From the NCBI GenBank assembly GCA_030704615.1, contig CM060733.1:18848001-18912000 (forward strand): a DNA stretch of 64,000 nucleotides, in the 5' to 3' direction. The DNA is from Takakia lepidozioides (lineage: Eukaryota; Plantae; Bryophyta). This document shows positions 10,914 to 42,229 of the stretch, in pieces. Position numbers and translations under genes: made by a program. The notes under the pieces are model-generated. The model ran no database searches and was not told where the DNA came from. It worked only from the letters and a program-made list of their open reading frames with translations. The stretch's first letter is position 1. The number at the start of each line of letters is the position of its first letter.

Positions 10914-13900
10914 TAGGGCGCCCTATTATGGATGGCTACATTTTAAACCTTTGTTACTTTAACATGTAGATGAGTTATACAGTAACATTTTAACCACATA
11001 TAAAAAAGTAAATTATTTCTCAACTCTCTTTTTTTTGGATTTTTTAATTTTATTACAAATGTAATATGAATTTTTGAAGATAATGAGCTACATTAGACCT
11101 ACAAAAGCTATAGTTTGGTTCTAAAAAATGTCTACTTTAAAATAATCCAAAACCCATAGGAGTTTTTTTTGTACCATGGTTAGGAGTTCCATGATTCAAG
11201 TGAAAGTCAGTAATAATACATTTGAGTGAAAAATAGTGTACAATAATAATAGTTTATAGACCAGACTGGCAGGGTTTGAGTAAAGGAGGGAAAGGTAGTG
11301 CAAGTTGGCCTTTGACCAATCCTATGTCACTCTATTATGACCTATTCCACATCCTATTTTGGAGTCTTTGTATCTCAGGAGACAAATTGAGGAGTTTCAA
11401 GCAGTTATAAACATGCGGGATGTCATTTTGCACAACAAGCTTTCTCTCTTGTGGTGTAGCATGTCTGCCAAGTATGATTTCATGGATTTTCTGGTGATTC
11501 TTGAGTTCAGTGAGCTCTAAGTTTGTGGCAAGTTGGTCCATCTTCACATTTGGTGGTGAAGTGTAGGCTGAGGTGGCTGCAGGGACAGTACATAGAGAGC
11601 CAAGACAATCTGGCAACATTGATGAAATCAGGCAATGATCTTGACTGCACCTTCTACAAGCACAGTTCAGCCTGTCTTACTCTCTTTTCAAAGTCGTCCA
11701 TGTCAAGTTTTATGTTTGATTCTGCAAGTGCAGCTCGTTGGGTGGATCCATAGTGGTTAGGACTAATATTGTGGTTAGACATCATTCAATTCTATCAATA
11801 TCATAGAGCACATTACAATATAGGTCAATACATTATCCTATAGGTCATTACACGATAGTCTGCCTGATAATGTGAACCTTACGGCAACTGGGAGATCACT
11901 ATATAGGTGACAAACTCTACTTCGCAACAATGAAGCTTTCCACATCCTAGAATTCCATATTTGGGAATGATGGTCTTTTATGTGGAGTTCACACAAAGAA
12001 GTATACTCACTACATATCTGAGTTTTGTGCTGAAAGTGGTTTAAGTAGTGGTGGCAAGGTGGACAAGTCTCCTCCATTTTTGAGAAGTCTTCTCCTCATA
12101 ACTTGTCTACGCTGATTTTGAATACACCATCCAGGAATAGTGCCACAGTATGGTGCATGGTACTCTGTAGGGAGAATTGGTCTTCCCTCTCTAATTGCAG
12201 CATGGAGCTTGTCTCCCACTTCCCTCACATTTTTTGCTGACCAGAATTTGTCAAATGTTTTTTTGGCCACCTTCTCCTTCACTCTCTGTTCTTGTGCAAG
12301 TTTGAGAGTTTCCTTTTCTAATGTAGCTTTAGCCCTTCTTTGCTCCTTTTGCTTTTTTTTTCTCATCTCTTTCTTTGTCTGACTGTTCTTTACGTCTAAT
12401 TTTCTCGTCCAATGCCGCCACATAATCCTCGGAAGTCATCACTATAGATTTGGAGTAATCAATGATAGGTTCTCTAGTTTTTGCCCGTTTAAAGGTAAAC
12501 ACTTGAGGGAGTGGCAAAAACTTGTTGATTCCTTCCAGTCGATGCATGTCTTCATTGTGTTGTTCATCTTCATCATTGTGCTGTTCCTCCTGACTTTTTG
12601 GGTCAGCAATGTCCACAAAGTAAAGGCAGGCGTAGCCATTTGCATTCTCATCTTCTTCTTCCCTAATGTCTTCAATAGTGATGTCTGGCTCATCGTCCTC
12701 TTCACTTTGAGAGTCACCCCCACTTTCTGTTTCAGAACCCTCATCAAGGCTTGGGGTTGATGCGAATGCTCTTGAAGGTCCATAATGCTTGTCCATTGCC
12801 CTTGCATTGTATGGCCAGATTCCAACTTTTGCAAATCTTTTTGTGATGTTGTGTTTTGTAAGTACTAACCTCAAGCCTTTGCTGGCCCACTCTGTCATTT
12901 CTGCGCATTGTCGCTTCATCTCGAGTTTTCCTGAATGCCTTCTTGAAGGGACCAAAGCATGCCACATCAAGGGGCTGGAGCACATGGCTTGTGTGAGCAG
13001 GTAATGTGACCATATCCAAACCTATTCTTTGTGCTTTCAAGACTGCTTCTTTTGAAACATGAGATCCATGCCCATCCAAAATCAGTAGATGTCGGTTGGT
13101 AGGTGAAATTCCTTATGCGTGCTTCTGGAAGTGGTCTAGCCAGCAAGTGAATAATGACTTGTTAATCCATGCTTTGTCTTGTATTGCCATAAGAGACCTC
13201 GACTCACATTTTGCAATGTAATTCTTCCTTTTTTGTCTGCCTTTGAAGATATAAAAGTTCGGTATGGAGAGACCTGTTGCGTTTACGCATACAAGTACAT
13301 ACATCCATTCTCTGCTTTGAGGTATGATACCATACACATAATGTGTGCCCTTCTTTGCCAATACCTTTGCTCCACTTTGCGACAAGCTTGCACTCTCGTT
13401 TCATCACAATTCCAAATTTGTGATGGGGGATACTTATGGAGATCATACATGCCTTGTAGGTTGGCATAGAAAGATTGACAATTTTCAACATTTACAGCTT
13501 TTGCTCTACGTACCTCCAAACCTTGAGCAGAGCACAAAGATATATCAAGATGACGTCGCTTGAACCATCTCCACCACGAGTTCTCAGGTATACCCTCAAC
13601 AAATGGTGTTGCGCACTCTTGTGTGATTTCAGCAACTTTCAATTTCAGTTGTCCGACATTGATGCCATGTCCCAATTCTTGCATATCGAAAATCCATTGA
13701 CAATGATATCCTCCTCATCTTTGGATAGCACTGTTGGACCTCCTTGCTTGCGACCATACACCCACCCATAAAGATGATTTCTAAGAGAAGCTGGAGGAAT
13801 GTTCCATTGGCGAGCAGCAACGTTGATTGGGCAGCCATCATCAACAACATTTATGGCTGCCTTCAGGTCTTCATCAGTCCATTCAACTCTCTTTCTTTTT

Positions 13901-14807
13901 TTGCTCCTGATGCTTGGAACTTGGAATTGAGAATGAAGAGGTCGTCTATCTCTATTGATAGGTTGTGTGTTTGAGGGAGGTTGACATGCTAGTTGTGGAG
14001 AGGGACAAGGATGTTGAGATTCTGTTGGCTGAAAATGATGAGGGTTGAACCTTGCAGGTTGAGGACGCAAAGGTTGGGAACAAGTAGAGATAAGTGATCT
14101 AGTAGTAAAAGGAGAGAAATGTGATCTCACATGAACATTGGGAGAAGCATTGGGCAAGTTGGTAATGTCTTGCAAAGGAATATGAGAGGGGTTTTGAGAT
14201 TGAGCAAACTGAAATGTGTTTATGTCAAACTCTTGGCTGTCCTCTTGACTATCTTGGAATGTGTAATGTGGATCAGATGGCATGGAAGAGAAGCATGACC
14301 AATGTGTCCACTCAATATTGTTGCACACTAACCTTTTAGTGAATGATAGCAACACAAGTATAATTCAGTTCAGATTTGCAAATATGCAAAAGGCAGATTA
14401 TAGTGCAGCATTGACAAGTTAAATACAAAAGAGCAACCAAAAAGCAAGAGAGTTTAGTGAAGCTTGTACCTCAAAGTATTGTCTAATGTTGAAAATCCAA
14501 TGCATGTCTCCAGCAAAGATTGTTTGTACGTAGAGGACTAGAGAATGGTGGAAGAACACCTTGCTGATCCATTTGGAACCTAAGGAATATCTATTTTTCA
14601 CCTCAAGGAGGTTCTGAAAGGTTCTAGAACCTATTTTGAATTTGAGATGTCCTTGTTCGGAATACGCTCTGGGCGACACGTCGCATGGATGGTAATAATT
14701 TCTTTGGATGATAAAATATGTTCTTGAGAATGTCATCCAAAAAACATTTTATTGATAATATTTTTATCCATTTATGACACTTACGTGCCCTATTTTGGAG
14801 GGGAGTA
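10914..14807 (-). mobile_element. Degraded pogo/Fot1-like (Tc1/mariner superfamily) DNA transposon; ends uncertain
   Basis: Contains a transposase pseudogene and AT-rich subtermini. The candidate right end is gccctattttggaggggag+TA at 14788-14807. The left TIR is not convincingly matched. Confidence 0.6.
12010..14355 (-). pseudogene. Frameshifted pogo/Tigger-type transposase (HTH_psq + CENP-B-like HTH + DDE_1)
   Basis: KRVEWTDEDLKAAI..AARQWNIP, SWWRWFKRRH, QIWNCDET, LLILDGHGSH and LPAHTSHVLQPLDVACFGPFK are spread over several frames. Confidence 0.9.
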
Positions 14808-14926
14808 GAAACTGACATGTCCAGGTTAAGGAGAACTTAGAGAACCCTATGGTTCACGTGTTCTATAAAGCTCCATATCAAGACAACCCCACACCATGAC
14901 CCAACCAGCTCACCATATCAGGGCAA

Positions 14927-15217
14927 GCCAAGCATTAGATGGGGCCCTGGAGTTGAATGCGAGGGGCCCGGTTCCGCCAGCGTGGACCCCCCCCCCCCAC
15001 CCATGCCCACCCCCTGCTCCAATGCCTACACACTGCGCGGCAACAACCGTGCGGCACGCCCTCCGCGCCTCATGTTCCCGCTGCCAGGACATGAGACGTG
15101 CCCTTTCCCGCATCCCCATCCCTCCTCCCACCATGCCCTCATGCATGGCATCACCCTCCATCCCCCCTGCATGCCTTCATCCTCCCCATGTTACATGGCA
15201 TCCCAAGTATACATCAT
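14927..15217 (+). repeat. Left long TIR (GC-rich, poly-C/G tracts)
   Basis: Closely matches the reverse complement of 21598-21889 along its length. Confidence 0.9.
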
Positions 15218-15649
15218 GCCCTCTTTCAAAAATCGTGTCCCCAAAGACTGGCGCTGCTCAGCTGCTCCTGCTCGTTTTCAGAGACCACTCCAAAATCTCC
15301 ACACTGCAGACATAATCTGGTTTAACATCTGTGTACATTTGGACATGTTCGTATGTCCTCGTTGTGGAGAGTCCAATGGAGCCCAAAGCGACCAGCATGA
15401 ATGTTGTTGAAAGCTCATTAACACCCCTCCGTAAAAGAACTTGGCAAAATGTTGATGCTGCCGGATTTTCGGGCACAAAAGTCTACCTTGGAGCACGGAG
15501 CGGAGCTGGCATGAGTTCTTTAAAGATCCTTCACGATGGTGGGACAACCGTAATCGCAATCCGTGTGGCTTTCTCTTAATGTATGAGGTGAAGAAGTTTG
15601 GCTCTTCCTATTAGTATCACGATTTGGTATTTTTCTTTGGTGTTTACAA

Positions 15650-17857
15650 GGTGCTTAGGAGGGTCAACTTGGTCTTAGGAGGTCGTGTTTCAATCTATGG
15701 CTGCTTAGCTGCACCGTGGTGGCTCTTACAGACCAATTGTACATTACCCCACCATGGACACAAGCAACATATACAAGAGGTCCTTTTGGGTTGATGGTCG
15801 GTTGAATCCTCCATCAGTCATGACACAAAGTCAAGGACAATGTGGTGAGGGAACCTTCTTGTTCAATCTATTTCAGCCTGATTTGCCCTCTCATCAGACT
15901 GATCGCAAGATATGGATATGCAGAGTAGGGGCGTGGTATCGAGGCTTTGGAGACATATGAACAAATGATGGAGGAAGAGATGAAGCCCAACCACATCACG
16001 TTTGTTTGCGTTTGCAATGCGTGTGCGAGCCTGGCAGCCTTGGAAAAGGGCAAAGAGGTCCATGGTGACATTGTCAGATCTGGAATGGTACCATATGTCA
16101 TTCTGAACACTGCCTTGCTAGATATGTATGCCAAATGTGGGAGTATTGAAGATGCAAAGGGAGTGTTCGACAACATGGCTGAACGAAATGTGGTGTCATG
16201 GAACGCAATGATCGTAGGATATGCACAACACGGGTGTGGGATGGAGGCTTTGGAGACCTATGAGCAAATGATGCGCGGAGGGGTGAAGCCCAACCATATC
16301 ACGTTTGTTTGTGTTTGCAATGCGTGTGCGAGCCTGGAAGCCTTGGAAAAGGGCAAAGAGGTCCATGGTGATATTGTCAAAGCTGGAATAGTACCAGACG
16401 TCATTCTGAACACTTCCCTGGTGGACATGTATGCCAAATGTGGGAGCATTGAAGATGCACAGGGGTTGTTCGACAATATGGCTGAACAAAATGTGGTGTC
16501 ATGGAACACGATGATTGCAGGATATGCAAGGACGCAGGATGGAGGCTTTGGAGACCTTTGAGCAGATGGTGTGGGAAGGGGTGAAGTCTGACCGCATCAT
16601 GTTTGTTTGTGTTTGCAAGGCATGTGCAAGCTTGGCAGCTCTCGACATGTATGCCAAATGTGGGAGCATTGAAGATTCAAATGGAGTGTTCGACACTATG
16701 GCTGAACGTGAGGTGGTGTCGAGGAATGCAATGATTGCAGGATATGCACAGCAAGGGCGCGGGACCGAGGCTTTGCAGACATATGAGCAAATGATGCAGG
16801 AAGAGGTGAAGCCCAACCACATCACGTTTGTTTGTGTTTGCAATGCATGTGCAAGCCTGCCAGCCTTGGAAAAGGACAAAGAGGTCCATGGTGACATCGT
16901 CAGAGCTGGTATTGTACCAAATGTCACTTTGAACAATGCCCTCGTGGACATGTATGCCAAATGTGGGAGCATGGAGGAGGCAAAGGGAGTGTTCAACAAT
17001 ATGGTCGAACGAGATGTGGCGTCCTGGAATGCTATCATTGCAGGAATGCCCAGCATGGTTATCATAGGGAAGCCCTGCAACTATTTGAAAGAATGCAAAG
17101 ATCATGATGTCATTCCGACAGTAAAGCACTTTGGCTGCATGGTGGACCTTCTTGGACATATAAGGAATTGGATGAGGCAGAGGAGCTCATTAACAAAATG
17201 CCAATGAAACCAAATGCTATGGTTTGGAGGGCCTTGCTTAGTGCCTGCAGAATCCATGGCAATGTGGAGATGGCTGAACGTGCTGCAACATCTATTCTCA
17301 AGTGGGATGAACAAGATGCCGCGACTTATGTGTTGCTATCAAACATCTATGTTGCAGCTGGCATGTGGGATGATAGTGAAAAGGTGAGAAAAATGATGAA
17401 GGTCAGAGGGGTTAGGAAGGAGCCAGGTCGCTGCTGCATTGAGGTTGGCAACAGTGCGCACACCTTTGTTGTAGATGACAAACTGCATCCCAGAATTAAG
17501 GAAATCCATACGTAGCTGAGAAGATTGTTTGGGCAGATGAAGGAGGCGGGGATGATAGTGCAAAGGTGAAAAATGATGAAGGTCAGAGGGGTTAGGAAGG
17601 AGCCAGGTTGCTGCTGCATTGAGGTTGGCAACAGGGCGCACACCTTTGTTGTAGATAACAAACTGCATCCCAGAATTAAGGAAATTCATGCTTAGCTGAG
17701 AAGATTGTCTGGGCAGGTGAAGGAGGCGGGGTATGTGCCTGACACACGCTTTGTACTGCATGATGTGGTGGAGGAGCAAAAGGAATTTTCTCTCTATCAC
17801 CAGAGTGAGAAGCTGGCCATTGATTTTGGGATCATCAGCACCCCTAGGACGCCCTAG
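15650..17857 (+). pseudogene. PLS-class PPR editing-factor pseudogene with E/E+ and truncated DYW
   Basis: Repeated VVSWNAMI.GY / PNHITFVCV.NAC / LVDMYAKCGS motifs, then VWRALLSACRIHG, a KEPG..IEV box, GYVPDT and HQSEKLA, ending before CxxC. Multiple frameshifts and in-frame TAG stops. Confidence 0.9.
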
Positions 17858-18534
17858 AAATTTCATGAATGCAACAGAGTGCATATCCATATTTTCTTCA
17901 AAGTGGGTCCAACTTCCATCTCAAACCTTGCATGCATGCATTCCTCCCATTCGGGATGGGAATGGTATTACACTCTTATGGTTTCATGATACCATTCATG
18001 ACTAATGGAATCATTCCCTTGTACAGGCACTTAGTCTATATGCACATATGCACTCATACTTTCTGTATGTGTTTTCATTCATAGCATGATAACTTTTAAC
18101 CTTCATCCATGACGGTTCATTCATCCCAAAGTTGCTCCAACGTGCATGAAAAAGCAATCATGCATGCATCCATCCCAAAGTGTACACGTGTTGTGTAGGA
18201 AGGGATGGGGCTGCACACGTGTCCTTGTCACTTGATTGGGTGGCTCATGAATAGGAACGGTTCGGGCAGCCGGCGGAAGAGGGTATATGGAACTTCAAAA
18301 CGCAAACTGGAACATGGTACATGACTATATTACTAGAATGTCGGTTCTGTTATCAATTCTGGGCATTTTTTCAGATGCGGGCAACAAAAAGGAAATGACG
18401 TTTTACATTCAACAATTAGGAATGTGTGCGTTTGCATCCTCAAAGATTTTGTGATCCCATTGTTCAACATTTTTTGGTAAAAGAACTTTCAACTCCATAA
18501 CATGTTTCCTGTGGAAGCTGGTTACACCTGGCTT

Positions 18535-18900
18535 CCACGAATTCAGTACTCCAGCTGTTGACTGATGTACGCGGATGGTGATCATCACCATGAATAAATC
18601 AATACTTTGCCCCAATAAGACTTTCCGCGAATTTGGTGCTCCAGCTGTTTGAAGATGTACATAGATGGTGACTATCACCATGATGGACTAACACACCCTG
18701 CAATCCAATACTTCAGCTGTTTGGTGATTCATTCTCCCCTGCAATGAAGCTTCCCGTCAGTTTGGTACCCCATCTGTTCAATAATGTCTATGATTGTGAT
18801 TGTTGGCATGGATGAATCAACACTGCTTTGTAATAAGGCCTACCATAAATATGGCACTTCAATGTTGCACGTGGATGACAATATTCACCATGAATGAATC
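18535..18900. repeat. Diverged ~90-bp tandem repeat (~4 units) between the two PPR 3' ends
   Basis: Recurring tggt(g/a)ctccagctgtt...gatgtac...gatggtga..atcaccatgaa..aatca. Confidence 0.6.
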
Positions 18901-19016
18901 ACTTTAAAGTTTTTGGTGGCAAAGAGATCATACGGGTAGCTCACACGGACAGTTGAGATGTTTTCAATGAAACACTTGTTTATTACCTGCTTGAGGCAAC
19001 ATATTTGCTGCTTTTT

Positions 19017-21240
19017 TCACCAGTAATCCACACAAGAGCAATCCCCATCTTGGAAGTGGTGAAAGCGGTTGGTATCCCGCCCAACAATTGTACGACCAAT
19101 AATCTTTGATATGAATTTGGTAGCGGTGTGGCAGTCACCACACATCCGTAGGTTTTTTATGACACGGATGGGCATCCCAGGGGGGATGCTCATGAGCCCA
19201 AAAGCAATCGTCAGCTTCTCATTGTGGTGACAAAGATAAACTTCTTTTTGCTCCACCTCCACATCATGCAATACAAACTGTGTGTCAGGTACATACCCAA
19301 CCTCTTTCATGCACATAGACAATCTCTTCAGCTCAGCATGGATTTCCTCAATTTGTGGATGCGAATTCTCTTCTTCAACGAATGTGTGCACCCGGTTGTC
19401 CACCTTAATGTAGTTGTGCCCTGGTTCTTTTCTCACACCTTTGTCCTGCATCAGTTTTCTCACTTTTGCTGAATCGTCCCACCTGCCAGCTGCAACATAG
19501 ATGTTTGATAGCAGCACATTTGTCACAGCCTCCTGCGGATTCAACTGCAGGAGGCATTTTGCCACACGTTCGGCTACCTCCACATTGCCATGAATTCTGC
19601 AGGCACCAAGCAAGGCCCCCCACACTGAAGCACCTGATTTGATAGGCATTCTGTTGGCAAACTCCTCCGCATCAAGCAATATTCCCACACGTGCAAAAAG
19701 GTCCACCATGCGGCCAGAATGCTCCACTGTAGGAGCAAGGCCATGAACTTGATTCATGTAATCAAAGTAGTGACAACCCTCATCCACTCGGCTTACATGG
19801 CTACATGCAGAGAGAACACAAATAAAGGTGACACTATTTGGCTTCAACTCTTTCTCTTGCATTTGTTCAAATAGTTGAAGGGCCTCTCTGGCACAACCAT
19901 ACTGACCACATCCTGCAATCACCGCATTCCATGAAACCACATTCCATTGAGCTATATTGTCAAACAAATGAATGGCATCCTCCATGCTCCCACATTTTGC
20001 ATAATGTTATCAAGGGCAGTGTCCAGAATGACATCTGCTGGGATTCCAACTTTGATTATCTCAGCATGCAGTTCTTTGCCCTTTTCCAGGCTTGCAAGGC
20101 TGGCACAAGCATTGAGAAGATATATGTGACTTGTTTGGTGCCACGCCTTCCTTGATCATGTGGTCATAGATGCCAAAAGCCTCCCTACCACAGTGATTCT
20201 GAGCATATCCTGCAATCATAGTGCTCCATGACACAACATCACGCTCAGCCATGTTGTCAAACACTTCAAGCGCATCCTTCATGTTCCCACATTTGGCGTA
20301 CATGTTTGTGAGGGCAGTCTCCAGGATGATATCTCGTGGAATTCCACATTTGATAATGTTAGCATGAACCTCTTTGCACTTCTCCAGGGCTGCCAGGCTG
20401 CCACACGCCCTGAAAACGCAAATGAAAACTATTTTGTCCGGAGTCACCTCTTCCTGTATCATTTGCTCATACATCTCAAAAGCCTCCATACAACACCCAT
20501 GATGAGTATAATTATCGAACACTTGACGCGCATACTGCATGCTCCCACATTCGGCATACATGTCAACAAGGGTAGTCTCCAGAATCACATCTGGTGCAAT
20601 CCCAGCTCTGATAATGTCGGCATGGACCCCTTTGCCCTTCTCCAGGGATGCTAGACAGGCACATGCTTTGCCAATGCATATGAATGTCACCTTATTGGGT
20701 GTCGTCCCTTCCTGCATCATTTGCTCATACATCTCAATTGCCTCCCTCCCGCACCCATAATTGGCATATCCTGCTATCATTATATTCTAGGTAAATATCA
20801 CGCGTTTAGGCATGTTGTCAAACACTTGCCGTGCATTCAGCATGCTCCTGCATTTGGCGTACATGTTCATAAGGGTGTTAAGTAAGAAGACTTTTGGCTT
20901 GAACCCAGTTCGGATAATGTGGGCATGCACCTGCTTTCCTTCTTCTAGGCCTTGCATGTTGATGCACTCCTGCAAGAGACGGACGTAAGTGTCGGAGTCT
21001 GCCGAAATGTCTTGGCCGGTTCAAAATGTGCACTGCGTCTTTCAGTCGCCCTGCCATACATAGTGTCCTTGCATCACCACATTGTGCTAGACCTTGTATC
21101 ATGGCAGCCAGCTCTGCTTTCACCCAAGGAGGGTTCAACCAACCTGCTATCCAACGTGCCTCCTTTGCGCACTTATGTCTGAAGTCTAGTGATCTTGGAC
21201 TTCTCTGTGAAAACCACCAGTGAGCCCCTGGGCAGCCATA
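19017..21240 (-). pseudogene. PLS-class PPR-DYW gene; N-terminal array disrupted, C-terminal 322-aa ORF (19017-19985) intact
   Basis: PLS motifs are spread over ORFs 20878-21138, 20787-20975 and 20061-20780. The C-terminal ORF has a KEPG box, HHNEKL, KNLRMCGDCH and RFHHFQDGDCSCVDYW*. Confidence 0.9.
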
Positions 21241-21597
21241 GATTCAACCACATGGTGCTGGCAGATTGTGGGCATGTATAGCTGCAATGGAAATTCATGC
21301 ATCAGACAACAAATTGGACCCTATGCAAGCACAAACTTCTTCATGTGGGCCAGACATCCACACGATTGCAACTTACAATGCAATGCAACATGTTCATGTG
21401 GGCAACATTATACAAACACAATTCAATATGGAAGGTGAACGCAGAGTGCCAGGGTGGGGACGCGTTTGTACAAGGAAATGCGCGATGAGGGTAGCAGAAC
21501 CCTGGATTAGGGTTGGAGTGTATGTGACGATATGGCATATATCCCAACGTCCATTCTTTCTTCAGATTTGCCATTTGAAATTTGAATAGATGTCAGA

Positions 21598-21889
21598 ATG
21601 ATGCCATAAACTTGGGATGCCATGTAGCATGGGGAAGATGAAGGCATGCAGGGGGGATGGAGGGCGATGCCATACATAGGGCAGGATGGGAGGAGGGATG
21701 GGAATGCGGGAGAGGGCACGTCTCATGTCCTGGAAGCGGGAACATGAGGCGCGGGAGGGAGTGCCGCGCGCGGCAGCAGCCCCGCGGTGTGTAGGCGTTG
21801 GAGGGGGGGTGGGCATGGGTGGGGGGGGGTCCACGCTGGCGGGACCGGGGCCCCTCGCATTCAACCCCAGGGCCCATCTAATGCTTGGC
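21598..21889 (-). repeat. Right long TIR
   Basis: Closely matches the reverse complement of 14927-15217. Confidence 0.9.
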
Positions 21890-22207
21890 TCAGGGCAGCC
21901 TACCTTACTATCACACACCCATCAAGTTGTATCTCAGCACGCTTGGGGAGTGAAGTGGCAGAAATATCCCCAAAGCTGGGGTTGGTGGAAGGGTGTATCT
22001 CTCCAGTTTCCTCGTCAGACTGAGATCCATCTTTTTGCCCTTCATTGTGGTAACAAATGCAAGCTGGAAAGAACCAGACCTGCTCCCAGGTGTCAAGAAG
22101 TGTTCACGCGGATTCTCCCATGGAAGAGGCACTATGGAACCTCTTCGATGAGGGTCACCACAGGTATGGGTGTCTTTATTGACTATGAGATGGAGGGGAG
22201 TTATTAC

Positions 22208-23136: not shown

Positions 23137-23338
23137 GTTATTACTCTCTTAAACAAGCTGCATTTGAGGGGGGTTTGTGTTTTGTGCTCTTTGACGGTGT
23201 TTTCTATTTGTTCTATGCTCCCCTTGAACCCCTCTACCCCCGTCTGCCTCAGGGATTCTATACAGTTAGTTCTTTCTTCTCGCCAAAAAGATGCACTGAA
23301 CTTTACAAGCAGCAAATCCACGCCATACTGCAGTTCAA

Positions 23339-23515
23339 CTACGTCACTACACGTCATGCATCCACGTCATACTGCAATAAAACCACTTTACTACACGTCA
23401 TGAATCCACGTCACGCTGCCCCTAAGCCACTCAGTACACGTCATGCATCCACGTCATAATGCAGATAAACCACTCTAGCCACGTATAGACACGCCACTTT
23501 ACTACACGTCATCAT
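23339..23515. repeat. ~45-bp tandem repeat rich in (C)ACGTCA
   Basis: tacacgtcatg(c/a)atccacgtca occurs three times plus partial units. Confidence 0.85.
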
Positions 23516-34539: not shown

Positions 34540-35525
34540 CACTTACCTTCATCCATGTTGGCTGTGTTTGATAAGGTGTAGAGTGCTGTGGATCACACTT
34601 GAGAAGGCCTTTAACCGCACGTTCTGCATGCTCAATGGATTCTGTAGGCACCAAGCAAGGCTCCCCACTCAACAACATCTGGTTCAATTGGCATTTTGGC
34701 AATGAAGTCCTCTGCCTCATCCAATCACCCTGCACGCCCAAGAAGGTCCACCATGCAACCAAAATGCAACCAAACCAGAAAGAGCTTCAAGCCTTCCTGT
34801 TGCATTTGTTCAACAGTTGCAGGGCCACCCTACCACACCCATGCTAAGCATATCCTGCGATCATCATACTCCATGAGACAATGTTTCATTGATGCATCTT
34901 ATCAAACACATGACACACACGATTCATGTCCTCGCATTTGCCACACATGAACAAGGGCAGTTTCCAAAATAATATCAAGGGTAGTTTCAGCGTTGATAAT
35001 GATAGCATGGACCTCTTTGCCTTCTTCCAGGGCTGCCAAACTGGCACATGCAGTGAGAGTGCAAGTGAAGTGACCTTGTTGGGTATCACCCCTTCCTGTA
35101 TCATTTGCTCATACATTTCAAAACCTCCCTACCTGACAATATCCTGCAATCATCGCATTCCCGCAGAACTTATCACACTTAGCCATAGTGTTAAACACTT
35201 GACATGCATCTACCATGCTCCCCAATTTGGCATACATGTCAACAAGAGCTATGTCCAAAATCATATCCCGTTGTAGCTTAGCCTTGAGGATGTCAGCATG
35301 AACCTCTTTGCCTCTTTCCTGGGCTGAAAGGCTCAAACATGCATTAAAAATGCAAATGAATGTGACCCTGTCAGGTGTGACATCTTCCTGTTTCATTTGC
35401 TCATACATCTTGAATGCCTCCATACCACATCCCATGCTGAGCATATCCTGCAATCATGGTCTTCCATGAAACCAAAGTTGGTTTAGTCATAGTGGTAAAC
35501 ACTTGTTGGGCATCTTTCATGAGAA
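34540..35525 (-). pseudogene. Degraded PLS-PPR fragment with E domain
   Basis: YEQMKQEDVTPDRVTFICIFNAC, ALVDMYAK and FGCMVDLLGRAG motifs occur in broken frames. Confidence 0.85.
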
Positions 35526-40508: not shown

Positions 40509-40982
40509 ATGGAGCCTGGAGATTTGTTAGGCTGAATAAGCCTTTCTACACTCTGGCTCAGCAGCACTTCAGGTGCTTGGAGTCGAACTTTGTATGTGGC
40601 ATCCAAGAGAATCCTTTCCCTGTGAATTGCAAAATATTGGACAAGTGTTTGAGGCATTTTGCAGAATGACATTATTGTAATCTCTTGTTTACTTCTCTAC
40701 CCATGCCAATCCGGACAGGGAAAAGAATGAAAGGAAGGAAAAAAAAACTTCATATCTTTCTTGGAAGGCTCTGCAAAGAGAGAACTAAACAATGCCCACT
40801 ACTCTGTTACTCTGTTGTTACTCATTAGCTTGCTTACCATAGCACAGAACCAGGGACCATATGCCACTGGAGCCTGGAGATTTGTTAGGCTGAATAAGCC
40901 TTTCTACAGTCTGGCTCAGTAGCACTTCAGGTGCTTGGAGTCGAACTTTGTCTCTGGCATCTAAGAGAATCCTTTCCCTGTG
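40509..40982. repeat. ~115-bp direct repeat (40509-40624 and 40868-40982)
   Basis: tggagcctggagatttgttaggctgaataagcc...gagaatcctttccctgtg occurs twice. Confidence 0.9.
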
Positions 40983-42229
40983 GATTGTAAAATCCTTTCC
41001 TTGTGGACCTCATTTCCTTCATCGAGGGCTGCCAAACTGGCACATGCATTGAGACATGCAGTGAATGTGACCTTGTTGGGTATCACCCCTACTTGTATAC
41101 ATTTCAAGACCTCCCTACCTGACAATATCCTGCAGTCATCACATTCCAGCAGACCTTATCCCGCTTAGCCATAGTGTCAAACACTTGACGTGCATCTACC
41201 ATGCTCCCACATTTGGCATATATGTCAACAAGAGCTGTATTCAAAAATTGGTATCCCGTGGTAGTTTACCGTTGAGGATGTGAGCATGAACCTCTTTGCC
41301 TCTTTCCTGGGCTGACAGGCTCAAACGTGCACTAAAAATGCAAATGAATGTGACCCTGTCAGGTGTGGCACCCTCCTGTTTCATTTGCTCATACATCTTG
41401 AATGCCTCCATACCGCATCCATGCTGAGCATATCCTACAATCATGGCATTCCATGAGACCAAAGTTGGTTGGTAAGCACTTGTTGGGCATCTTTCATGAG
41501 AACTTTGCCTTCCAATTACCTCAATCTAAATTAAGAACTTTCTTGCAGCTCCTAATCGCCTTTTGTCTGATAGATGAAGGCTATTATAGACTTCACTTCA
41601 AATTCATCCCTCAATCTTCGGCTTCTGTGTACAAGGGGTCTATGGATTTCTATTTTTTTGGCATTACAATCACATGCCAGGTCTGTTTTGGATTGCTAGA
41701 GCTCGAGCAGCAGTGCTCTTCTCTCCATTCATAACAGAGAGATCACTAAGCTCACCTATAGGTCCTGTGGGATAGGACATGTCCACTCTTTCCCATATTT
41801 CTCAGAAAATGTATTTCAGAGGTTGACAGTGAGAGACCCCCATACAGAAGCAGCACTGCCAGCTGACAATTTATATATACCAATCACAATTTGCAAAACT
41901 TGACACTCACTCCTACAAATATCATGGTGAAGCGGGTTTTACCCTTGACAACTCACTCTATTTTAGCCTGGAAATCTAAAGGCAGGTAAATCCTCCCTCA
42001 CTTGCCAGGCATGAGTCACAAACAACTGGGCAGGTCAATGAGAAGGGTGGAGGGATGCAAATAAGATCAAACCATGCTCAGATAAACCATCAATGTTGAA
42101 TACTTGGAACAGGAAACATAAACTAATCTACTAGGCTGAAATTTACACTCAGGGCCAATTGTTCCCATAAGAGTGCTTAGGCATCACCGACCTCCATTTT
42201 GGGCCCCACTACGAGTATAGGAAGCTAAT

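Follow-up and report, generated by a model that had tools for sequence, protein, structure and literature searches.

A probable Pack-MULE-type element with two decayed PPR-DYW genes as cargo in the bryophyte Takakia

PPR-DYW genes are the specificity factors of C-to-U editing in plant organelles, and a retroposition model of PPR expansion was reportedly put forward by O'Toole et al. in 2008. The closest described systems to the locus analyzed here are the Pack-MULEs of rice, maize, tomato, and Arabidopsis (Jiang et al. 2004; Ferguson and Jiang 2012, PMC3310237; Zhao et al. 2018, PMC5861414), which have long GC-rich arms, a 9-bp duplication, no transposase, and host-gene cargo that lies between the arms and adjoins them. 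MULEs and Pack-MULEs are recognized by inverted repeats of at least 100 bp (typically 100 to 500 bp) with at least 80% identity and less than 20 kb apart, a duplication of 9 to 11 bp with at most two mismatches, host-gene cargo, and the lack of a transposase (PMC3310237). Some of them, PM-ZIBP and type 2-46, were amplified to 10 to 30 copies with the same cargo (PMC3310237). In maize MuDR, the order is arm, inward-reading gene, spacer, inward-reading gene, and arm, where the two convergent genes, mudrA for the transposase and mudrB, each have a promoter in their arm that drives inward transcription (PMC3310237). As for PPR sequence in a cut-and-paste transposon, the searched literature yielded only a partial fragment in a grapevine CACTA: Cactavine-5, an autonomous angiosperm element with two copies, carries a transduplicated portion of PPR coding sequence together with 3′ UTR sequence (Benjak et al. 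2008, PMC2528002). PPR expansion in Takakia (~2,000 PPR genes), hornworts, and lycophytes has been ascribed for the most part to dispersed duplication that bears signs of retroposition (PMC13386178).

Here, we describe a locus in the window (the whole 64-kb stretch of Takakia lepidozioides DNA that was analyzed) where positions 14927-21889 probably represent, with a likelihood of about 60%, a dead copy of a non-autonomous Mutator-like family of the Pack-MULE type that has some tens of copies and a fixed pair of PPR-DYW genes as cargo. The original prediction had described GC-rich inverted repeats of ~290 bp that start with G and enclose a ~7-kb segment, which alignment confirmed: A left terminal inverted repeat at 14927-15217 (+ strand, 291 bp, 64% GC) pairs with a right one at 21598-21889 (− strand, 292 bp, 66% GC), in a window with a GC content of 45%. 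The left arm is C-rich on the + strand, and in both arms the C-rich strand faces inward. The alignment (14926/7-15217 versus 21890/89-21598) displayed 88.3% identity over 299 aligned columns (E = 1e-101), with 256 matches, 21 transitions, 9 transversions, and 10 gap columns, yielding a K2P distance of 0.114. The first base of the arms is G (GCCAAGCATTAGATGGG...), within the tip GCCAAGC, and the left arm contains a short 26-nt tandem motif at 15127-15185. No second pair of arm sequence was present anywhere in the 64-kb window.

The predicted 9-bp flanking duplication with one mismatch was found directly outside the arms, as TCAGGGCAA at 14918-14926 and TCAGGGCAG at 21890-21898. These match at 8/9 positions, the first eight being identical; in an alternative reading, the duplication is a perfect 8-mer, TCAGGGCA. 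When pairs of positions were drawn at random from the window, with ±2 registers allowed per side, 0.3% of the trials gave a match of at least 8/9 and 0.06% a perfect 8-mer. Among the same-organism contigs, one spanned 21813-22099 without mismatch, covering the edge of the right arm and the adjoining flank. On the left flank, we observed an ORF at 13645-14355 with no Pfam family and no homologue.

The interior consists of two convergent PLS-E-DYW PPR genes that start near the arms and read inward, with a 1.1-kb spacer between them. Its Pfam matches were confined to PPR, E, E+, and DYW, while ORFs other than PPR had no Pfam family; no transposase domain was detected in any ORF tested, inside the element or nearby in the window, in line with the predicted lack of a recognizable transposase. 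Two near-gene-length PLS-PPR/E/DYW paralogues had also been predicted, and the paralogues are indeed present, but both are pseudogenes with frameshifts, stops, and truncation. Gene 1 (15697-17905, + strand), of the PLS-E-E+-DYW type, has a possible ATG remnant at 15697 that is followed by a stop, a PPR array that becomes recognizable from ~15851-15914, two frameshifts near 16560 and 17045, and a DYW domain that ends after ~17855 and is missing its CxDC part. Stops are brought in by a 180-bp tandem duplication in its E+/DYW start (17367-17731, + strand; two copies, 94%). Gene 2 (19017-21239, − strand) is a near full-length PLS-E-DYW pseudogene with a single main frame and a possible start codon at 21239, and is disrupted by a frameshift at ~21040, a stop at ~20787, an in-frame deletion at ~20510, and a frameshifted stretch at 20130-20010. 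Its open frame is limited to the last 322 codons (19017-19985, − strand), which comprise one PPR, an E motif (E_motif, 8e-16), and a complete DYW deaminase (DYW_deaminase, 4.6e-40, profile positions 1-93 of 93) that has the HxE and CxDC motifs and terminates in DYW. The best matches of this 322-amino acid E-DYW ORF in a protein search were plant PPR-DYW proteins with 52-59% identity (Ginkgo, Sphagnum, and metagenomes). Neither gene has the uninterrupted frame from array to deaminase of a functional PLS-DYW editing factor, and both are intronless across the aligned length. The remaining interior consists of a left sub-terminal non-coding stretch (15218-15696, + strand), a right one (21240-21597, − strand) that is unrelated to it, and the spacer between the two 3′ ends (17906-19016), which has neither a protein match nor a poly(A) run and contains three direct repeats of 44-61 nt at 18533-18901.

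The two halves of the element are collinear homologues, with arm, start-codon region, PPR array, E, and DYW in the same order. The homology of the start-codon region links 15253-15315 and 15685-15732 to 21173-21251; because the corresponding region of gene 2 (21173-21236) is 77% homologous to 15253-15315, the left half contains this region twice. Identity between the halves is uneven, with 88% in the arms and 68-77% in the start region, PPR array, and E/DYW (74-77% in the coding parts), and on each side the arm is separated from the gene by ~350-700 bp of unrelated DNA. This combination is in keeping with transposon termini but not with a simple inverted duplication made in one step. The collinear halves point to an ancient inverted duplication of one arm and one gene, as opposed to two separate captures.

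To what extent the arm sequence recurs in the organism is apparent from the summed depth of Logan contigs matched at 80% likeness, which is not a copy number and which, in the arms, could be inflated by unrelated contigs drawn in by C-rich low-complexity parts. In the DNA run X1, the right flank had a summed depth of 49.5, the arm bins 3811 and 4973 (77-100× the flank), a sub-terminal bin 2197 (44×), and the spacer 432-1413 (9-29×). In run X2, the corresponding values relative to the single-copy right flank were 27-51× for the arms, 30× for the sub-terminal DNA, and 4-21× for the spacer. The right sub-terminal stretch (30-44× flank) thus had about half of the arm depth, as expected if each element consists of two arms and one such stretch. 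At the arm tip, the depth dropped to single copy, from 1800 at 21851 to 49.5 in the 21900-22099 bin.

A contig of 509 nt in run X2 (contig 16) matched 21682-21889 with 9 mismatches and 8 gaps, compared to 22 mismatches and 9 gap columns for the left arm over the same part, after which the match ended exactly at 21889 and a further 278 nt were unlike the flank in the window. As the right arm is matched more closely by this contig than by the left arm, the mismatch counts suggest that the contig represents a third arm copy. Restriction of the arms to this locus, which had been named as an outcome that would speak against the prediction, hence does not hold: Arm depth is 27-100× that of the flank, which is single copy, and the additional arm copy stops at the same tip. 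The family to which the element seems to belong would comprise some tens of copies. In neither the same-organism contigs nor the window did we see a further complete copy flanked by a duplication of its own, and no paralogues of the flanks, the spacer, or the sub-terminal DNA, which could have revealed a repeat-borne empty site, were present in the window. The non-source run X5 had no contig on the right flank. PPR depth in the same-organism contigs amounted to 1e4-1e6, with many paralogues at ≥80% likeness. Beyond the organism, a protein search with the ORF crossing the right arm gave 124 word-sharing candidates, none of them significant, and a metagenome scan with a 23-base arm-tip pattern gave 0 matches. 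The 33 metagenome matches to a 17-base arm-tip pattern were all due to chance (at most 23 matching bases), and the sole match of a profile of both arm ORFs among 1.84 billion representatives, P0121, was a translated tandem repeat unrelated to the arm.

Compared with the described systems, the element is of a known kind, with a new cargo and in a new lineage. Arms of 291/292 bp with 88.3% identity and a 9-bp duplication with one mismatch (or, in the other reading, 8 perfect bp) lie in the range given for MULEs or, for the latter reading, just below it, and an interior that is homologous to ordinary host genes (PPR, E, E+, and DYW) and lacks a transposase is that of a Pack-MULE. The Mutator vehicle of the original prediction is supported in part, by the agreement with the published structure and by the multi-copy arms; the assignment to Mutator itself is putative, being drawn from two lengths, that of the arms and that of the duplication, and neither an empty site nor a transposase partner sharing these arms was seen in the material covered. 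In contrast to the patchwork of fragments in known Pack-MULEs, we find two near gene-length, convergent PPR-DYW copies, here in a bryophyte lineage, with decayed cargo and with arms that are only 88% alike. The layout is the same as in MuDR, but PPR-DYW genes occupy both places that are held there by mudrA and mudrB. By analogy with MuDR, the arms may have given inward-facing promoters to both genes; unlike in MuDR, these promoters are only putative, and the arms were almost absent from one putative RNA run (X6, where the RNA label is the tool's guess), which had a depth of 0-7 in the arms versus 8618 in the N-terminal part of the gene. In the DNA run X1, the ratio of the two was ~0.08.

The family would have originated in a founder that, to go by the homology of its halves, was probably formed by inverted duplication of one arm and the adjacent PPR-DYW gene. 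A MURA-type transposase from an autonomous MULE would have acted in trans, binding the arm ends and making a 9-bp staggered cut at the target, and the cassette may then have multiplied as one block, reaching some tens of copies. Judging from the divergence of its arms (K2P 0.114) and from its two pseudogenes, the present copy is old and dead.

Inverted gene duplication would likewise give collinear homologous halves, and the locus could thus be a fixed palindromic segmental duplication of one PPR-DYW gene with its upstream region that was never mobile. Its arms would then be upstream or promoter sequence conserved across a PPR subfamily of ~100 genes, such sequence could be multi-copy too given how extremely numerous PPR genes are in this organism, and the match of the flanks would be due to chance. 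We consider this unlikely, as the arms are more alike (88%) than the genes (74-77%) with unrelated DNA in between, and since both genes are dead, selection on a promoter cannot explain the better-kept arms. Moreover, a flanking match of this quality has a chance level of 0.06-0.3%, the DNA is single copy exactly beyond the arm tip, where the third copy ends at the same base, and the spacer between the 3′ ends is itself multi-copy (4-29× flank). A different doubt concerns the superfamily: The same cargo could sit in a non-autonomous cut-and-paste element that is hAT-like, with an 8-bp duplication, or of an undescribed kind. Elements of the hAT type have 8-bp duplications and short arms (~5-30 bp), and the tip GCCAAGC is unlike their usual tips. 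The perfect 8-mer TCAGGGCA in the flanks, shorter than the 9-11 bp given for MULEs, would suit such an element, and the link to Mutator is not made via any transposase. Arms of ~290 bp, however, are typical of MULEs and far longer than those usual for hAT (the 8-bp reading is possible, the arms are 291 bp), the tip does not look hAT-like, and the match of the third copy ending at 21889 fits the 9-bp reading, which makes another superfamily distinctly improbable.

Most improbable of the explanations considered is that related PPR genes were copied independently, by retroposition or as DNA, and that the two copies came to lie tail to tail, with a conserved 5′ UTR (the arm, GCCAAGCATTAG...) in common. 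Such an origin would agree with the published retroposition view of PPR expansion, which likewise accounts for dispersed, intronless PPR-DYW paralogues (PMC13386178), and both genes here are intronless over their aligned length. Retroposition, as in LINE-mediated retrocopies, should leave a poly(A) tail and a separate duplication at each gene but no inverted arms, and the locus agrees with none of these expectations: There is no poly(A), with no run of A or T longer than 6 at either 3′ end, and the only direct repeat encloses both genes, whereas each retrocopy would carry its own duplication and the outer flanks of independent copies should not match. Because the arms are nearly absent from the putative RNA run X6, retroposition could not have carried them along as a 5′ UTR, and the spacer was co-amplified. 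On the same grounds, we rejected twin-priming and other retrocopy readings. A Mutator-like, Pack-MULE-type cassette hence remains the preferred reading.

For such a cassette, the multi-copy Pack-MULE-like structure agrees with the DNA-transposon route to PPR-DYW expansion that had been proposed; the cargo examined here, by contrast, consists of two dead genes, and the route itself would still be conjectural. The data hint that DNA transposons helped to scatter the PPR-DYW family. A Mutator-type element that carries whole PPR-DYW genes and was amplified together with them would provide a second, DNA-based route, and a countable family on which this can be tested. It is doubtful that the family is, now or recently, a working DNA-level amplifier of complete PPR-DYW genes driven by arm promoters, with some copies intact and expressed; if it were, a measurable share of the PPR genes would derive from Mutator transposition and not from retroposition. 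With the present copy being dead, the significance lies in genome evolution rather than in any function today. In number, tens of element copies compare with ~2,000 PPR genes.

The segment 14927-21889, hereafter the element, is bounded by a single inverted-repeat pair (14926/7-15217 and 21598-21889/90), as found both by self-comparison of 13.5-23.5 kb and by BLAST of each arm against the window; these BLAST searches found no further arm copy within the 64 kb. The two arms align over 299 columns with 88.3% identity (E = 1e-101; K2P 0.114; counts of 256 matches, 21 transitions, 9 transversions and 10 gap columns), and they are rich in G+C (64% and 66%, versus 45% for the window), with an inward-reading strand that is strongly C-rich in both. 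Their outer boundary is sharp: GCCAAGCATTAGATGGG... is common to both tips, and the sequences beyond it are unrelated apart from a direct repeat, TCAGGGCAA at 14918-14926 on the left and TCAGGGCAG at 21890-21898 on the right. The original prediction of GC-rich inverted repeats of ~290 bp around a ~7-kb segment, flanked by a 9-bp duplication with one mismatch, is borne out by these data. We estimated the chance level of the flank match from 400,000 random position pairs from the window, allowing ±2 registers on each side, and obtained a match of 8/9 or better in 0.3% and a perfect 8-mer in 0.06% of the trials.

The element lies within all of the operational search rules for Mutator-like elements (MULEs) of Ferguson and Jiang, namely, inverted repeats of ≥100 bp with ≥80% identity, a duplication of 9 to 11 bp with ≤2 mismatches, and arms <20 kb apart (PMC3310237). 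We consider it probable (roughly 0.6) that the element represents one defunct copy of a non-autonomous family, Mutator-like and of the Pack-MULE type, whose fixed cargo is a convergent pair of PPR-DYW genes; that the same inverted arms belong to a TIR element of a different superfamily appears quite unlikely. Maize MuDR has two convergent genes that are transcribed from promoters in the arms, and some fixed-cargo Pack-MULEs have amplified to 13-29 copies (both PMC3310237). The layout of MuDR is the same as that of the element, except that PPR-DYW genes occupy both gene places in the latter. In our literature search, PPR sequence in a cut-and-paste element came up in one published case only, a CACTA family of grapevine (PMC2528002). 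The kind of element is known, and its cargo and lineage are new. Given how numerous the PPR genes of Takakia are, capture by a transposon is in itself not very surprising.

Pfam matches in the interior of the element are limited to PPR, E, E+, and DYW domains, which upholds the expectation that it carries no recognisable transposase; the leftover ORFs of the spacer and of the sub-terminal stretches matched no Pfam family. Gene 1 (about 15697-17905, + strand) starts with a possible ATG remnant and a stop directly behind it, and its PPR array is recognisable from near 15851-15914. It contains frameshifts near 16560 and 17045 and a 180-bp tandem duplication (17367-17731) that introduces stops, and its DYW domain ends prematurely after about 17855, ahead of the CxDC motif. 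Gene 2 (21239-19017, - strand) follows one main frame; its lesions are a frameshift (near 21040), a stop (near 20787), an in-frame deletion (near 20510), and a stretch in shifted frame (20130-20010). Because of these lesions, both genes are pseudogenes; the two homologous PLS-PPR/E/DYW copies that had been predicted as cargo are therefore present, but disabled. The C-terminal 322 codons of gene 2 (19017-19985, - strand) are nevertheless open from an ATG and encode one PPR, an E domain, and a DYW deaminase domain of full length (E = 4.6e-40), in which the terminal DYW and both motifs, HxE and CxDC, are preserved. With about four disabling lesions in the 1.2 kb upstream, an open stretch of this length would arise by chance in roughly 3% of cases, and the open end may reflect either luck or a short E-DYW protein that was retained for a while. 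In collections without the source species, the closest proteins to this ORF were only 52-59% identical. The wider claim, namely that elements of this kind supplied functional editing factors, appears unlikely to us.

The two genes converge on a 1.1-kb spacer (17906-19016), and neither has a poly(A) run at its 3′ end. In the putative RNA run X6, a contig of 812 nt fits 18387-19071 at about 80%, covering the 3′ end of gene 2 plus roughly 630 nt downstream of it. Transcription of a paralogue whose 3′ region is related is thus probable, and for this reason the spacer's right part resembles a former 3′ UTR.

The element appears to be repeated in the organism. We searched four runs from one sample, probably the source organism, together with a plant metagenome and the putative RNA run, and summed the depth of contigs aligned to 16100-22099 at 80% likeness. 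Summed contig depths cannot be equated with copy number, and unrelated contigs may be drawn in by C-rich stretches; we therefore read the following figures as "tens of copies" only. In the DNA run X1, the right flank (21900-22099) had a summed depth of 49.5, with one contig (21813-22099) matching without mismatch; the right flank was taken as 1x here and in a further run, X2. The two arm bins reached 3811 and 4973 (77-100x flank; 27-51x in X2), the sub-terminal bin 21300-21499 reached 2197 (44x; 30x in X2), and the spacer bins 432-1413 (9-29x; 4-21x in X2). The one-sided sub-terminal stretch thus has about half the depth of the arms, as expected for a family of complete elements. Single-position depth inside the arm was 757-2902 in X1 and still 1800 at 21851, so that the drop to single copy occurs no more than about 50 bases from the tip. 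A 509-nt contig of X2 aligns to 21682-21889 with 9 mismatches and 8 gaps, where the left arm has 22 mismatches and 9 gap columns, and accordingly represents a third arm copy. Its match stops exactly at 21889, and the contig then extends for 278 nt unlike the flank in the window; among these data, this comes closest to a second insertion site. Some members of the family may have a shortened arm: a single contig in X1 (depth 298) and a single one in the plant metagenome X5 connect 21599 directly with 21678, so that 78 bases at the right arm's inner end are missing.

The two halves of the element are collinear homologues in arm, start-codon region (15253-15315 and 15685-15732 versus 21173-21251), PPR array, E, and DYW; on either side, arm and gene are separated by roughly 350-700 bp of unrelated sequence. 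This collinearity is shared with a fixed inverted gene duplication whose flank match arose by chance, a reading that we find unlikely. A one-step inverted duplication would predict even identity between the halves, whereas we observed 88% in the arms and 68-77% in all other parts. Transposon termini that stayed similar during the active period of the family, enclosing an older inverted duplication of one arm and one gene, are the better fit. Expansion of PPR genes, including the 2,016 of Takakia, has been attributed to retroposition and LTR flanks only (PMC13386178), and the arms could correspondingly be the common 5′ UTR of two retrocopies, which we judge very improbable. In X6, the arm bins had a depth of 0-7 versus 8618 for the N-terminal coding part, at an arm to N-terminal coding depth ratio of about 0.08 in X1. 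If X6 is RNA, then the arms are not included in stable transcripts and could not have been moved by retroposition. In collections and metagenome contigs without the source species, protein searches with the arm ORFs found no homologue and the arm-tip pattern had no genuine match.

The PPR arrays reached summed depths of 1e4-1e6 in X1, and same-organism contigs (≥80% likeness) summed to this range on PPR, E, and DYW across 16100-17900 and 19000-21100, versus 50 for single-copy sequence: the organism has an enormous, fairly young PPR-DYW family. Two further PLS-PPR pseudogene fragments in the window (34635-35520 and 40955-41513, both - strand) are frameshifted over all three frames, and have neither surrounding inverted repeats of ≥40 bp nor an arm copy. 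Directly left of the insertion, a chain of ORFs of 137, 218, 133, and 236 amino acids (12010-14355, - strand) matched no Pfam family and had no homologue among 5.8 billion proteins; the last of these, of 236 amino acids, contains a helix-turn-helix-like stretch as judged by eye. At 1.4 kb to the right of the element, 23300-23484 holds a 43-44-nt tandem repeat in three to four copies of about 75% identity, with the core ATCCACGTCATACTGCA.
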